DNA of 64,000 nucleotides from contig NC_134030.1 of the NCBI RefSeq assembly GCF_964204645.1, positions 21,722,210 to 21,786,209 of the forward strand, written 5' to 3'. Position numbers and translations under genes: made by a program. Positions 34 through 64,000 of this stretch are shown piece by piece. Each line of letters starts with the position of its first letter. The first letter of the stretch is position 1. Origin of the DNA: Tubulanus polymorphus (Eukaryota; Animalia; Nemertea). The notes below the pieces were generated by a model. That model had not been told where the DNA came from. It made no database searches and saw only the letters and a list, made by a program, of their open reading frames with translations.

Positions 34-372
34 ATTTTCCCGATGAAATTCAAAGACGAGGTACTTTCACCGGACAACCTGACATTAGAACTGAAGGAGA
101 AGTTGTAGACTATATTTGTAGAACTTTGGGTGGGAGGCCCGATCCTACAGTGATATACCAGCAGAAGAGAAGAGGTTCTGAACAATGGGAGCCAATTCCT
201 CCTGATCCACAACCTCGTAAAGTACCTCTTAAAGGGCATTTAAAAGGTTTTGACACGACGTACAAGTTCAAAGCTGATTTCACACTGCACAATGGAACGT
301 CATTTCGATGTGCTGTAAAGGAGAACCTTACGTTTCCAGAACCTCAGCAATTTAATCCAATCATTGTTCATT
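34..372 (+). CDS. Ig-like (C2-set-like) domain exon D3 of gene A copy 1
   Basis: cag|ATTTT...CATT|gtaag, 339 nt. [23 protein letters not shown]...[17 protein letters not shown] has the two Ig Cys; Tyr replaces the usual core Trp. Confidence 0.85.
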
Positions 373-3300
373 GTAAGTAACAGATTCATTTGTTGTATTT
401 GAGAAATCTTCCTAAGAATAACAGTATGGGTGGATCTAGGACTTTTCTAAGGGGGTGGCTGACAGCTGAGACGCACTGAATCAGCGAACTGAAGAAAATT
501 TAAGAAAAGCTTGAAAAATCCTCGGGAAAATGGTGGAATTCGACGGCATTCGAGCGAAATAATGACATCCTGCTGAGTCATAGTGCCCGCGCGGGTAGTA
601 TGTGGTGTTGGTAATTCTAATGAAATACCCGCACGATTCATGGGGAAACGTATTTATCAAAATTTTGTCATTATAATTTACAATTTTGGTTTCGGGAATT
701 TTTGACACGGATTGGGAAAAATTCAGATAATTGAGATTGAGAAAATGACTGTTTACCGGACACAGATTATACGGCCTAGCGGAATGGCTGTAACCGAATG
801 ATAAGTGGTCTCATATCGGGTGGAGCTTCACTGGTAAAATGTATGTATAAATGTATGATGAATTCGCTACTGTTGTTCTGGTTCCGAGGCTTATTTTACT
901 GCGGCGAATTCGGACGCGAAATAGCAGGACCTAATAACAAATATCGGGTGGAGCTTCACCAACATAATGCATGTATAATTGTATACGGCGATGGATTCGC
1001 TGCGCTACTATAAGTTCCGATTCTGATTCAGAGGCAGAGAATGAACAATCTCATGGGGCCTACTACGAACGATCCCAAACCATTTTCATCTTTTTAATTC
1101 AACAAACAGTGCGAGTTATTAGAAACGTTACATAAGTCAATGTGATAAGTTTGCTGATCTTGCGCTGAGACATGCTTGCTCGTGGGGGGGGGGGGGGGGG
1201 TTCACGGTTGCGAATTTGATTCCTCAATCGAGTTAAACATGAACAGCGCCGATATTTTTGATCAAAGTAATGATTTAAGGCGAAAAACCCTTTTCAAAAT
1301 GTTTCGGAAGGCATAAGAGGGGGTGGGGGGGGTATAGTTAGCCACCCTATTCACCCCCTAGATCCGCCCCTGATAACAGTATAAAGTTTTCCCAGATACA
1401 ATACAAACCCCAGTCCTAGTAGTCCAGACCTATCCGCCCTTAGTATAGTCGCGACCAAGGCGGGAATCTCACGATGTCATCAGGTTCGAATCCCTGCCGA
1501 GCGAGGAACGTGATCGAGTCTGACGATGTCATCAGGTCCGAATCCCCGTCGAGGGAGGATGGTTCTTGTCTAGTACCTAGCCGTCGTTCCCCAAACAACT
1601 GTTGTAGGGAACCCGTAACGACGACTGGTATTCAGACTAGGATGGCTCAACCTCTGACAGGGTTTCAGAACTTTGCTAGGTCAGATATAAGTTTGCTAAG
1701 GCAGTATGCTTGTAAACAACCTTCACTAATGATTTGTCTTTTATCAGATTTTGAACCAGTTTACAAGAAATCCAGTGAAAATGAAACAAATGCAGCGTAT
1801 ATTGTAACAGTTAATAGTTACCCATTGACTCAACAAGTTACATGTGACCCTCCAGCTGTCGTTCAAAAACTATCAAACTATCAGTGGAATATAACGATAC
1901 CTATCGTAAATAGTACCACAACTGATTATGAAGGGCGATGTTTGGCTGACGGTATTAATGAAAGGGTCATTGATGTCGCTAGTTATCATAACGCCGGTCC
2001 AACTGATGAACCAGGTAAGATTGCGGGTCACAACTGGATGGATTTTACATGAATTGGAACAACCAATTCAGGTCCGGATCCAACATCAATTCAATCAATC
2101 AATTTAGGGAGCGCTCAAATAGTACGTACATTCTTAGAGGGGATGGGGATCGTGGAAGTACTAGGGGTGGGGGTTAAAAAAACTGCAAACCTGACCATAG
2201 GTATTATTTGAATACTCCCTTACTAAATGTAATTCATTATCTCGATTAGTCGTCACATCACTGAAGTCTGCTGTATTCTTTTGTCCCAATTTGTGTTTCT
2301 AATTCTTTTTACTAAAGTCAGGAGATGACCGCGTCGTAATTCGAGCTGAGCTTAGTTTAAGTCGTCTAAATCTAAGTCGTCATCTGGATAAGTCGTCACA
2401 TTACTGCGATTTTCTGAGTCAATTTTGGTTTCCGATTTAATTCGTGGATTTGGATACGTCAACATAATGGCAATAGTAGTGGAGTCTCGTGATATCATCA
2501 GATTTGAATCCCTGCACAGGATGACGTGATTCTTAGTATTGACTGAACTCAGCATATTTCATTATTTATCACATTCAAATATCACTTAACAAAATAATTT
2601 ACCAAAAATAACTCTACTTTACTTTATTTAGATGCTATTTAAGGAAGGAAAAAATACTTTTGACTTTTCAATCATTAGTTAATAGTTAAAACGTAATTAT
2701 TTCTAGCTTCTATATAATTTAATTTAATTGCTGATATGCTTGAATTTCAGTTTTGTCTTCGATTTAATTGCTGTTATTTTTATCACTAGTTACAATAGAA
2801 CAGCATAATAGCTTCACATGATTTAATATAAATTGCTGATGAATTCCAGATGAAGGGAATGGAGGCAGAGTGTTTGGTGCTGTAATCGGTGTACTGATAT
2901 TATTGATTCTAATAATACTGTTAATAATGTGGCGTCGTGGCTGCTGTAAGTTTGACCTAAAACCATCATTTAATCTGAAAAACAATGATAATCAAACTGC
3001 AGAATCAGAATACTGTATTTTTGTGTTTGGTTTTTATTGGGTTGTTTTGTCAGGTGATTGTGCATCATGTAGGACAAACAGTATTTCTGTTTTCTAATTA
3101 ACAGTACCGTGTTTGTGTCCGAAATCTAAAGATGTGATTGAATTGTTGCGTTGGACAAGTGAAACCTGGTATGAAAAAGGTAAGATTCTCTCACATGATT
3201 TACTGCGCATATTCTCAGATATCGGTTTGATAATGTTTAGGTGTTGTTTTCTCTTTGTAGATCATGAGAATTGGGTGAAAACACGTGACCAACCGCGACC

Positions 3301-61560: not shown

Positions 61561-64000
61561 TTCCAAGCCGTCGTACCCCAAAAGGTTTGATTTGACACTA
61601 AAATCAGTTGTCGGATTGCAAGAAACAGGAGTTAATCTCTATTTGACAGTTTATCATCAAACGTTGTAGGGAACCCGTGACAACGACTGGTATTCAGACT
61701 AGTACACAGGATTATAACCGCCAGTCTCTAGTGGTGGCAGGGGCTGGGTGGAATTGGGTGTAACTCACAACTGTGGAACTGTGTTTTGTATCACGCTATT
61801 ATCAAGATGTTTGTTAATCTCTTTTTGGGCTTGAATCATTTGAGATTTTATACGAAAGGAAAATGAAAAAGAGATGAACACAGTTTCTAATAAAATCATT
61901 GAAATCTTTATCTTTGTTATTTGGTTGTATGTAATTTCTGCGCTATTTGATTACTGTAGATCATTGATTAATTCATTAAGATCATCGATTAATAATTGCT
62001 GTAACAATTAATTGTAATTACATTAGTTGATTATAAAATATATTTTCTGCTTTATCTTTCATAAAAATCTGATTATATATTTCTCGTTTTTCCGCGTCGT
62101 ATCGAGAAAACTTCTCTTTGTTTTGCTGAAATCTGTGAAGGTTCACATTTGATTGTTTGACTTTTATTAGTCAAAATACTGAAATGTGCTAAAATATACA
62201 GTGCAACTGAAGTAGATGAAATTCAGTGTAACTGAATGATTGCAGTATTGTACCGTAGTTGTAACTATATCGAGCAGAAATAAATTGTAAACGAATTTGC
62301 ATTTCAATAAATTATCAGCGGTTGTTCTTGGGGAATATTAGGCCTACATTGTAGTCAAACTTACGCTGTATAACTGTATTTTGATACAATGTAACTGGTT
62401 TACTATTTTACTATACATAAAATATGTTTTAAGTTAAAAACTGTAAATATGCATCACTGATTGATTTACTGATTTGATAAGTTACTGCATTACTGATTGG
62501 TTTGATTGATCATTGAAAACTGTGATAAGTTTTATTCCATTTGAAAAAGTTTTAAAAAACTTCGTGCTGTATTTTTGCTAGAAATTGCTAACGATGTAAC
62601 GTGCTAATTCTATTCGCTTAAATAAATGAATTTATCTATGTAAATAAAGTCATTTATTTCTTTTCTATCAACTGCAGCCGGAGTAGAAGCGACCCCGGGT
62701 CGGGTGAGGTTGACACTTGGTCATCTCAAGTCTTACCAATAGCTTCCCGTTAACCCCAACTATAGCCGAATAGGACGCGAACCTAAAATCTTCGGTGTGC
62801 CAGCCGGGCACGCTAACCACTAGGCCATAGACAAATAGTTCTTCAACGGGTTTGTAAATGCGTCTGATCAGTGTGGTGAACATTTATCTGTGGTGACTAT
62901 CAGTCGGGTGTGTGGTGACTGATGACCATTCAGGTGCGGTGACTGGTGAGTCAGATGTGGAGACTCTATTCACTAACAGTGCCCGCTCTATCATTGTGTG
63001 TTACATCCTCGCTCCTTTATGAAACCATTGATGCGGTTTATAAGATCAGCTACACGCGGACTCCTGGTAAAACTTTGTGCTGTGTTTTTTGCTTTATTCG
63101 CTTAAATAAAAGAATTTATCTTTATAAATAAAGTCATTGTTTTCTTTTCTATCAACTCAACTGCAGCCGGAGTAGAACCGACCCCGGGTCGGATGAGGTT
63201 GACACTTGGTCATGTCCAATCTTACCAATAGCTTCCCGTTAACCCTAACTCTAGCCGAATTGGACGCGAACCTAAAATCTTCAGCGTGCCAGCCGAGCAC
63301 ACTAACCACTAGACCATACACCAGTAGTTTGTAAGTGCGTGTCTGGTCAGGTGTGGTGAACATTTATCTGTGGTGACTATCAGTCGGGTGTGTGGTGACT
63401 GGTGACCATTCAGGTGCGGTGACTGTCGAGTCAGATGTGGAGACACTATTCACTAACAGTGCCCGCTCTATCATTCTGTGTTACAGTTACAGCAGTTTCA
63501 ATGCAATTGTCAGAAAGTTCTAAGGAAGTCGTTTTGTCCTGCAGCTCCTAGAAGTTGCCTCTTTTTCCATAGATGAAGTAGTTAAAATTACACCTTGTAT
63601 CCATCTCTGACACTTCTGCCTTCGCGACGTCGTGAATGTATTTTACAATCTCTCGGAATTGATATCTTTTATTGTATTTCACTAAGAATTTCTAATTGAT
63701 ATCTAAAAGTTTGATAATTTTTGATTTTTCAGTTTCTAAAAATGTATACCTTATTTTGAGTGGAATGGATTGATTTTAGAGACCCGCAGTTTATGGAGCG
63801 TAGATGGATTATAAAAGTAATAGTTCATTGACTCCAATAGGTGTAAAATGCGATACATTGTTAAACCATTCTTGTCGTACGTGGCGTTGACCTCTTTTAC
63901 CCGACTGGTATTTCTTCACACCTAAAGGTGCTCGCACATGTCACCCGTTATATCAAACGAGCACCGATACCTCTTGTGAAAAAATCATGAAATTCAACGA
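61561..64000 (+). repeat. 3' UTR/intergenic duplicate of 27123-29110 (next unit of the A-B tandem array)
   Basis: Near-identical through the window end (gaaaaaatcatgaaattcaacga at ~29090 and ~63978). Includes a ~490-bp tandem duplication of the SINE region. Confidence 0.92.

Follow-up and report, generated by a model that had tools for sequence, protein, structure and literature searches.

A 64,000-nucleotide stretch of the nemertean Tubulanus polymorphus genome (hereafter the window; C6, NC_134030.1, positions 21722210-21786209 of a 268-Mb genome, GC ~35%) lies in a tandem array of two kinds of immunoglobulin (Ig) receptor gene, which we call A and B. Our analysis points, with somewhat more confidence than doubt, to a recently amplified, Tubulanus-restricted receptor cassette in which A would be the recognition chain and B the signalling chain, with a likely role in immunity or non-self recognition. 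To our knowledge, almost nothing is known of immune or self-recognition receptors in Nemertea. Lineage-restricted tandem families of the immunoglobulin superfamily (IgSF), such as Alr, KIR/LILR, FREP and VCBP, have time and again turned out to serve recognition. We found no literature on the present family, whose genes are already in RefSeq as 'uncharacterized'. The original prediction described a clustered, tandemly amplified invertebrate Ig receptor locus with two gene types that have a common Ig domain and different tails, and the results below bear this description out.

A tandem array of B-then-A units

The window contains most of one A gene, a B gene and a second A gene, followed by the DNA that leads up to the next B gene.

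34-27122, plus strand: gene A1 (LOC141907671; closest product P0037), start cut off, placed by mapping against A2 and RefSeq proteins
29839-33201, plus strand: gene B1 (LOC141907918; XP_074653785.1, isoform X1, P0011; 374 amino acids), placed by RNA-derived joints and a RefSeq match
36548-61560, plus strand: gene A2 (LOC141907917; XP_074653783.1, isoform X2, P0040; 1302 amino acids), placed by an exact protein match
61561-64000, plus strand: A2-B2 spacer, with homology to the region preceding B1 (to 29113)

Self-BLAST revealed that positions 5-29113 of the window recur at 39826-64000 with 72-93% identity and numerous indels, in agreement with the proposal that the DNA downstream of A2 repeats the DNA upstream of B. 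The further B gene predicted past position 64000 is also present, its first exon starting at window-equivalent position 64722 (722 bases beyond the window end) and its Ig exon at ~65310. A genome-wide search identified ten copies of the B Ig exon on C6 at 96-100% identity, spaced in order by 34.8, 36.6, 40.0, 37.5, 35.6, 40.4, 43.0, 37.1 and 25.7 kb. Copies of the exon encoding the third Ig domain of A (D3) alternate with them, and two further D3 copies lie upstream, so that the flanks hold the additional A/B units for which a search had been suggested. The array reads A0, A1, then (B1,A2) to (B10,A11), giving 12 A and 10 B genes over ~420 kb (C6 21.68-22.10 Mb). We compared sequences across 256 kb (C6 21670001-21926000) comprising A0-A6 and B1-B5, while units B6-B10 and A7-A11 are known from search coordinates.

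The duplicated unit had been proposed to be A plus B, with a length of 35-40 kb. Joint duplication of the two genes stands, with a measured period of 25.7-43.0 kb, an order of B then A, and two A genes (A0 and A1) without a B. Gene A2 fills nearly all of the apparent spacer, and the unit is best described as B followed by A 3.3 kb later, as measured from B1 to A2.

We considered whether the repeat might be an artefact of assembly, with haplotypes or collapsed reads placed in tandem. The units are indeed highly similar and short-read contigs cannot resolve them; the ten array copies are 95-99% identical, so that reads from copies and from alleles are indistinguishable. We nevertheless regard an artefact as extremely improbable. 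The units differ by 2-20%, an 82-bp repeat within them ranges from 2.7 to 9.5 units, and both the period and the presence of a tail-exon duplication vary from unit to unit. Moreover, two haplotypes cannot yield ten units, and sequencing runs of two samples hold contigs both at least 99% and 95-99% identical.

The association of B with A extends beyond the array. Of 32 exons found genome-wide of the type encoding the first Ig domain of A (D1), 24 are preceded on the same strand, at a distance of 3-15 kb, by a B-type tail exon, and the reading frame is open in each of the 32; within the array, B lies 3-6 kb upstream of A, again on the same strand. Diverged B-then-A units occur on C6 at 18.3, 20.5 and 22.8 Mb, in an inverted block at 22.3 Mb, and on C9, with B tails 46-79% identical and D1 ~70-83% identical. 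This order could be explained by inheritance of the cassette as a unit or by functional coupling of the two genes.

Two gene types with a related Ig domain

Gene B1 consists of six exons.

29839-29938, plus strand: exon 1, signal peptide (GT..AG joint)
30476-30796, plus strand: exon 2, Ig domain, with phase-1 introns on both sides (GT..AG joints)
31521-31560 and 31998-32040, plus strand: exons 3 and 4, stalk micro-exons (GT..AG joints)
32331-32440, plus strand: exon 5, transmembrane (TM) helix (GT..AG joints)
32691-33201, plus strand: exon 6, tail and stop (GT..AG joint)

Mapping of RNA-derived contigs covered the B region and yielded five GT..AG joints (29938 to 30476, 30796 to 31521, 31560 to 31998, 32040 to 32331 and 32440 to 32691), all with canonical splice sites and checked phases. 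The joined exons give a translation identical to P0011, and the Ig exon borders first read from the sequence (30476-30796) match the RNA-derived joints exactly. B is spliced and transcribed. Contig depth at 29291-29487 and 31655-32048, upstream of and inside B1, exceeds the surroundings by hundreds-fold, and loose contig ends are abundant nearby at 29419/29450 and 31811/31948; the two intervals look like high-copy interspersed repeats inserted beside and inside B.

The B1 protein comprises a signal peptide, one Ig domain (residues 34-140), a short stalk, a TM helix (~178-203) and a tail of ~170 amino acids. A tyrosine-motif tail had been predicted for B, and we found it to carry, in order, YDEL, YDDI, YANI, YMDM, YIDM, YMDM, YMNT, YVNT and YSYATV. 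The three Y[MI]DM motifs sit within 14-amino-acid repeats encoded by a 42-bp tandem repeat (32862-32983), and three YxN motifs are also present. B-type paralogs elsewhere in the genome have 3-12 YxxM repeats, indicating that the YxxM tail is a family trait. No canonical immunoreceptor tyrosine-based inhibitory motif (ITIM; [ILVS]xYxx[ILV]) or activation motif (ITAM; Yxx[IL]x6-9Yxx[IL]) was found in the B tail, and neither the B nor the A TM helix contains a charged residue.

Among B1-B5, no exon has an indel or a stop, and the ratio of nonsynonymous to synonymous substitution rates (dN/dS) lies between 0.15 and 0.33 for the exons of signal peptide, Ig domain, stalk and tail (0.33 in the tail) and is 0.67 for the TM exon. 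The B copies are under purifying selection. All tail tyrosines are invariant across B1-B5, and the tail exon is open in all ten B genes of the array.

YxxM motifs dock phosphatidylinositol 3-kinase (PI3K) in chains such as CD28 (YMNM), CD19, DAP10 (YINM), PDGFR-beta (YMDM) and IRS (YMXM). Like CD28 and CD79, B is a type I protein of small size with a single Ig domain, and the p85 site of PDGFR-beta, YMDM, is a motif found in its tail. Unlike these co-receptors and adaptors, to which it has no homology, the B type varies in motif number from 3 to 12 through the 42-bp variable number of tandem repeats (VNTR). C2 encodes a p85-type iSH2 domain (49.6 bits, above the Pfam cut-off). Once phosphorylated, the B tail would be expected to bind SH2 proteins, those of the PI3K p85 type at YxxM and those of the Grb2 type at YxN, making B a candidate signalling chain.

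The B Ig domain had been called a paralog of A D3, and comparison supports this relationship: B1 Ig and A2 D3 share 50% identity across 101 amino acids (expectation value E = 1e-29) and have the motifs originally quoted in common. Across 12 domains of the family, C31, W54 and C94 never vary, and FKADF..HNG..FRC is likewise invariant. With D3 as query, phmmer matched a hemicentin-like protein in 17 of its Ig repeats (E = 4.7e-49) and also an I-set-rich protein, and Pfam recognized I-set (1.6e-9), Ig_2 (5.4e-9) and C2-set_2 (3e-7) when applied to the whole paralog P0001, with single Ig exons scoring under Pfam thresholds. On these matches, D1, D3 and the B Ig domain are assigned to the IgSF. In the Protein Data Bank, the only sequence match of the shared-Ig profile, to a ferritin, was rejected as chance. 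Outside the window the family is modular, with P0010 and P0023 (C6/C9) combining a B-type Ig, an A-type stalk and a hydrophobic end, and P0007 carrying two B-type Ig domains in tandem.

Gene A is larger and more elaborate, and its product is a type I membrane protein. P0040 could be placed residue for residue on 36548-61557 in ~50 segments, with 3-5 residues unplaced, and D1, D2 and D3 each occupy one phase-1 exon.

36548-36661, plus strand: A2 signal peptide and RVKR site (in-frame match)
37743-38388, plus strand: 82-bp tandem repeat, 7.9 copies, 98% matches, before and into the A2 D1 exon
~38337-38633, plus strand: A2 D1 (in-frame match)
38733-39065, plus strand: A2 D2 (in-frame match)
39857-40189, plus strand: A2 D3 (in-frame match)
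40677-40943, plus strand: A2 two-cysteine stalk, 89 amino acids (in-frame match)
41671-41769, plus strand: A2 TM helix (in-frame match)
42962-60567, plus strand: A2 tail, ~43 micro-exons of 5-52 codons (in-frame matches)
61357-61560, plus strand: A2 last exon, ending ...GTVV and stop (in-frame match)
~36, ~1750 and ~2849 (starts), plus strand: A1 D3, stalk and TM exons (exon mapping)
~26960-27119, plus strand: A1 last exon, product ending ...GTQV (exon mapping)

Full-length RefSeq products exist for A0, A1, A2 and A5. An RVKR-type dibasic site, kept in most paralogs, closes the first exon of A directly before D1 and may be a proprotein-convertase cleavage site. RefSeq isoform X3 of LOC141907917 (P0048, 1275 amino acids) is missing exactly the TM-exon residues 450-483, which predicts a form with a signal peptide and no membrane anchor.

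Each unit of the 82-bp repeat consists of the last 24 nucleotides of an intron (with a TTTCAG acceptor) and the first 58 nucleotides of the D1 exon, and the RefSeq A2 model takes the last copy as the D1 acceptor. The repeat precedes D1 in all seven A copies examined (A0-A6) with 2.7-9.5 units. A possible donor, G|GTAC, lies 42 nucleotides past the acceptor in each unit and would create candidate frame-keeping mini-exons. A second tandem repeat, of 51/78/108 bp, occupies the D3-stalk intron of A2 (40288-40636); it is open in two frames, absent from the RefSeq product, and present as 8.9 units in A4 (region 163749-164440) and ~2-4 in A2.

The A2 tail is 820 amino acids long and those of the A genes range from 820 to 1060. 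A tandem duplication of ~15 tail micro-exons is found inside A1, A3, A4 and A5, with a single copy in A0 and A2. In A1 the duplication lies within 10348-25800, where each exon gives two matches and 10652-11933 matches 19077-20233; the duplicated segment spans ~260 amino acids and its halves are 69% identical in P0002. We found no Pfam family in the tail of P0002 or in P0040 segments, tail pieces searched at E up to 10 giving noise only, and an ESM Atlas feature search returned no usable match (leads below 0.9). All 15 proteins with a related tail come from T. polymorphus. AlphaFold2 predicted the 820-amino-acid tail to be helical throughout, with low confidence at a mean predicted local distance difference test score (pLDDT) of 38.4, with only residues ~636-745 reaching 65-88. 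Fold assignment with VIA-align was rejected, as its matches were to generic long-helix or coiled-coil structures (best Z 7.4) and none covered the confident segment.

The C-terminus of A has the form of a putative class I PDZ ligand, [ST]-x-[VIL]-COOH, with T-[QV]-V closing 7 of the 13 paralogs that have a helical tail (TVV in A2, TQV in the A1 product). The helical tail with a PDZ-type end that was originally described for A agrees with the predicted helices and with the ends of both gene products.

Other features of the A introns include satellites at 10430-10653, 11815-12753, 13266-14373, 20082-20233 and 51723-51854, among them a (TA)n run and two minisatellites, one of 22 bp in 43 copies and one of 14 bp in 79 copies. 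The 22-bp repeat also occurs at the matching sites of the duplicated A1 segment and of A2, there with only 6 copies. The 12-14 kb bin has a strong excess of C over G (GC skew -0.51). An A1 intron holds an open reading frame with a gag-like CCHC zinc-knuckle (17788-18398), probably a retrotransposon remnant.

Diversity, sister genes and a candidate role

Among the array A copies, D1 is the most diversified domain. Amino acid identity across A2-A6 is 78-97% in D1, compared with 92-100% in D2, 91-96% in D3 and 91-100% in the stalk; across A2-A11, D1 identity is 79-96%, and D3 is 94-99% identical at the DNA level among A3-A11. At equal synonymous differences per site (pS), nonsynonymous differences per site (pN) in A2-A6 reach 0.068 in D1 versus 0.026 in D2, with dN/dS of 0.69 and 0.25 respectively.

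The family appears restricted to this animal. The D3 exon, queried with phmmer against a set of 1.84 billion representative proteins, gave only 30 matches, and all family-specific matches whose source was looked up come from T. polymorphus. Three paralogs, P0001, P0004 and P0042, carry a NACHT domain. In P0042 the ectodomain, TM helix and most of the helical tail (corresponding to P0040 residues to ~853 and 970-1104) stand ahead of NACHT, and in P0043 tail segments come first and NACHT follows. No NACHT was detected in the 256-kb region by tblastn with the paralog NACHT regions. A sea cucumber AjNLRC4-like receptor is likewise an Ig-NACHT receptor (PMC8699970). The sisters P0001, P0004 and P0042 share the ectodomain and TM helix of A, and P0042 most of the helical tail as well, whereas the array A genes in the 256 kb lack NACHT and end in a PDZ-type motif.

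We infer an immune or recognition role for the array from the diversification of D1 and from these NACHT-bearing sister genes; the B-then-A order found at 24 of 32 D1-type exons also speaks for such a role. In the arrangement we favor, A would serve in recognition, its variable binding face formed by D1 and parts of D2, and its helical tail and PDZ ligand would anchor or cluster it. A and B, the latter as signalling chain, would act in one pathway, possibly in a complex that joins D3 to the related Ig domain of B. This keeps, as a hypothesis, the sensor/signaller pair first proposed. Non-self or immune recognition would be the most likely role, given the NACHT(-LRR) module that follows this ectodomain and tail in sister genes.

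An alternative is that the array is a young and largely neutral expansion in copy number, in which function rests with one or a few units, the others are redundant and decaying by drift, and the diversity of D1 and tail reflects relaxed constraint and not selection for diversity. The units are similar enough for this, with synonymous divergence (dS) of ~0.03-0.10 for B and ~0.04-0.13 for A2-A6, and dN/dS in A is 0.6-0.9 overall and 1.1-1.5 in the distal tail, a value that may be inflated by paralogy within duplicated exons. A1 and A3-A5 also have indels or frame differences relative to A2 in segments 32 and 49, A0 has an apparent stop in an indel region of D2, and VNTRs and internal duplications differ among copies. 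However, the reading frame is open in each of the 10 B tail exons and in every one of the 32 D1-type exons, B1-B5 are intact and under purifying selection, and full-length RefSeq products are available for the four A genes named above. Constraint in A2-A6 is also uneven, with D2 at 0.25 and D1 at 0.69 despite equal pS, unlike the uniform decay of neutral copies. We therefore consider largely neutral expansion distinctly unlikely.

Several observations weigh against the favored arrangement. Within the 256 kb compared, A0 and A1 are preceded by no B-like sequence, and B-like genes occur on C9 with no D1-type exon nearby; together, these show that pairing is not obligatory. Complex prediction for A D3 plus stalk with the B ectodomain returned a score of 0.00, which gives no verdict either way. 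No domain of the A ectodomain exceeds a dN/dS of 1 (0.25-0.84), and the nominal values of 1.9 in mid-D1 and 1.7 in D2 reached by 20-codon windows belong to small patches with few sites. The values of 0.6-0.9 for A and 1.1-1.5 for its distal tail may instead mark relaxed constraint in redundant copies. An AlphaFold2 model of the A ectodomain, built from a 12-row alignment, has a mean pLDDT of 36.5, too poor to confirm the Ig fold, and the role of the A tail is a guess because it has no recognizable domain.

Some of the same points favor the view that A and B are functionally unrelated, with A an adhesion protein of the nectin, Kirrel or SynCAM kind that serves tissue or neural organization, B serving separate growth or adhesion signalling, and the two being neighbors through segmental duplication. 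Three Ig domains and a class I PDZ-type C-terminus form the layout of junctional adhesion proteins. A is like nectin, Necl and Kirrel in its three Ig domains, single TM helix and C-terminal PDZ ligand-type end, and the missing ITAM, ITIM and charged TM residues, the A genes without B, the lone B-like genes on C9 and the empty A-B binding prediction all fit this view. In contrast to those proteins, A has an extra stalk and an 820-1060-amino-acid helical tail, is multi-copy and species-restricted, and has no sequence relation to them that we could find. More than 30 copies exist in the one species found, whereas adhesion genes of that sort usually occur as a single copy and are conserved from phylum to phylum. 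Diverged units on C6 and C9 retain the B-then-A order and strand, A and B have a family-specific Ig domain in common, and sister genes end in NACHT. We consider unrelated functions unlikely.

Relation to known receptor systems

The original prediction likened the locus to the paired receptors of vertebrates and to the allorecognition genes of Hydractinia. Alr of Hydractinia is a large, taxon-restricted family of unusual IgSF proteins whose genes lie together in a single chromosomal interval and whose TM helix is preceded by a non-Ig spacer (PMC9546547, Huene et al. 2022). The Tubulanus genes are alike in being clustered type I IgSF genes with tandem Ig-like domains, a membrane-proximal non-Ig spacer and divergent tyrosine-motif tails, and Pfam barely recognizes the domains of either family. 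They differ in forming a two-gene cassette and in their tails, which carry YxxM/YxN motifs or a long helical chain and not ITAM or ITIM. Among the 30 matches from 1.84 billion representatives, no cnidarian protein appeared, no vertebrate protein was a specific match and no homology to Alr was seen. The sequence likeness to Alr, or to any family outside Tubulanus, goes no further than generic Ig similarity. Nemerteans are solitary, and we know of no fusion or rejection biology in them.

The KIR, LILR, SIRP and CD300 loci are likewise tandem clusters of Ig receptors that arose by recent duplication and combine related ectodomain modules with different tails. However, their pairs share almost the whole ectodomain at high identity, whereas A and B share only the membrane-proximal Ig domain at 50%. 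B is without D1, D2 and the stalk module of A, so that one of four A ectodomain modules is held in common and the likely ligand-binding D1-D2 is not. The vertebrate pairs also oppose an ITIM chain to one whose charged TM residue recruits ITAM adaptors, and Tubulanus has neither. The SIRP/KIR/LILR analogy does not survive these differences. Clustering, a related Ig domain and different tails, together with the Alr-like restriction to one taxon and one interval and the non-Ig spacer, are what speak for a true paired-receptor system or an Alr homolog; the partial sharing of modules, the signalling motifs and the search results make that reading, already disfavored, very improbable. The labels paired receptor and allorecognition are only loosely apt.

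A more far-reaching proposal, which we put forward as speculation and consider distinctly unlikely, is a nemertean-specific mode of non-self recognition. Here, D1-diversified A proteins, whose output is a helical scaffold in some and NACHT-LRR in others, would signal through an obligate one-Ig B chain that docks PI3K and Grb2, a receptor and co-receptor pair evolved independently of the logic of vertebrate antigen receptors and of CD19/CD28, and the 82-bp acceptor VNTR would add isoform or regulatory diversity.

The cassette offers a concrete two-gene candidate for a recognition system in Nemertea, in which a variable distal Ig domain and a PDZ-type end on one chain stand beside a conserved multi-YxxM partner, with NACHT-fused sisters elsewhere in the family. 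It also presents two unusual gene structures, a cytoplasmic domain assembled from more than 40 micro-exons and a VNTR made of duplicated splice acceptors.

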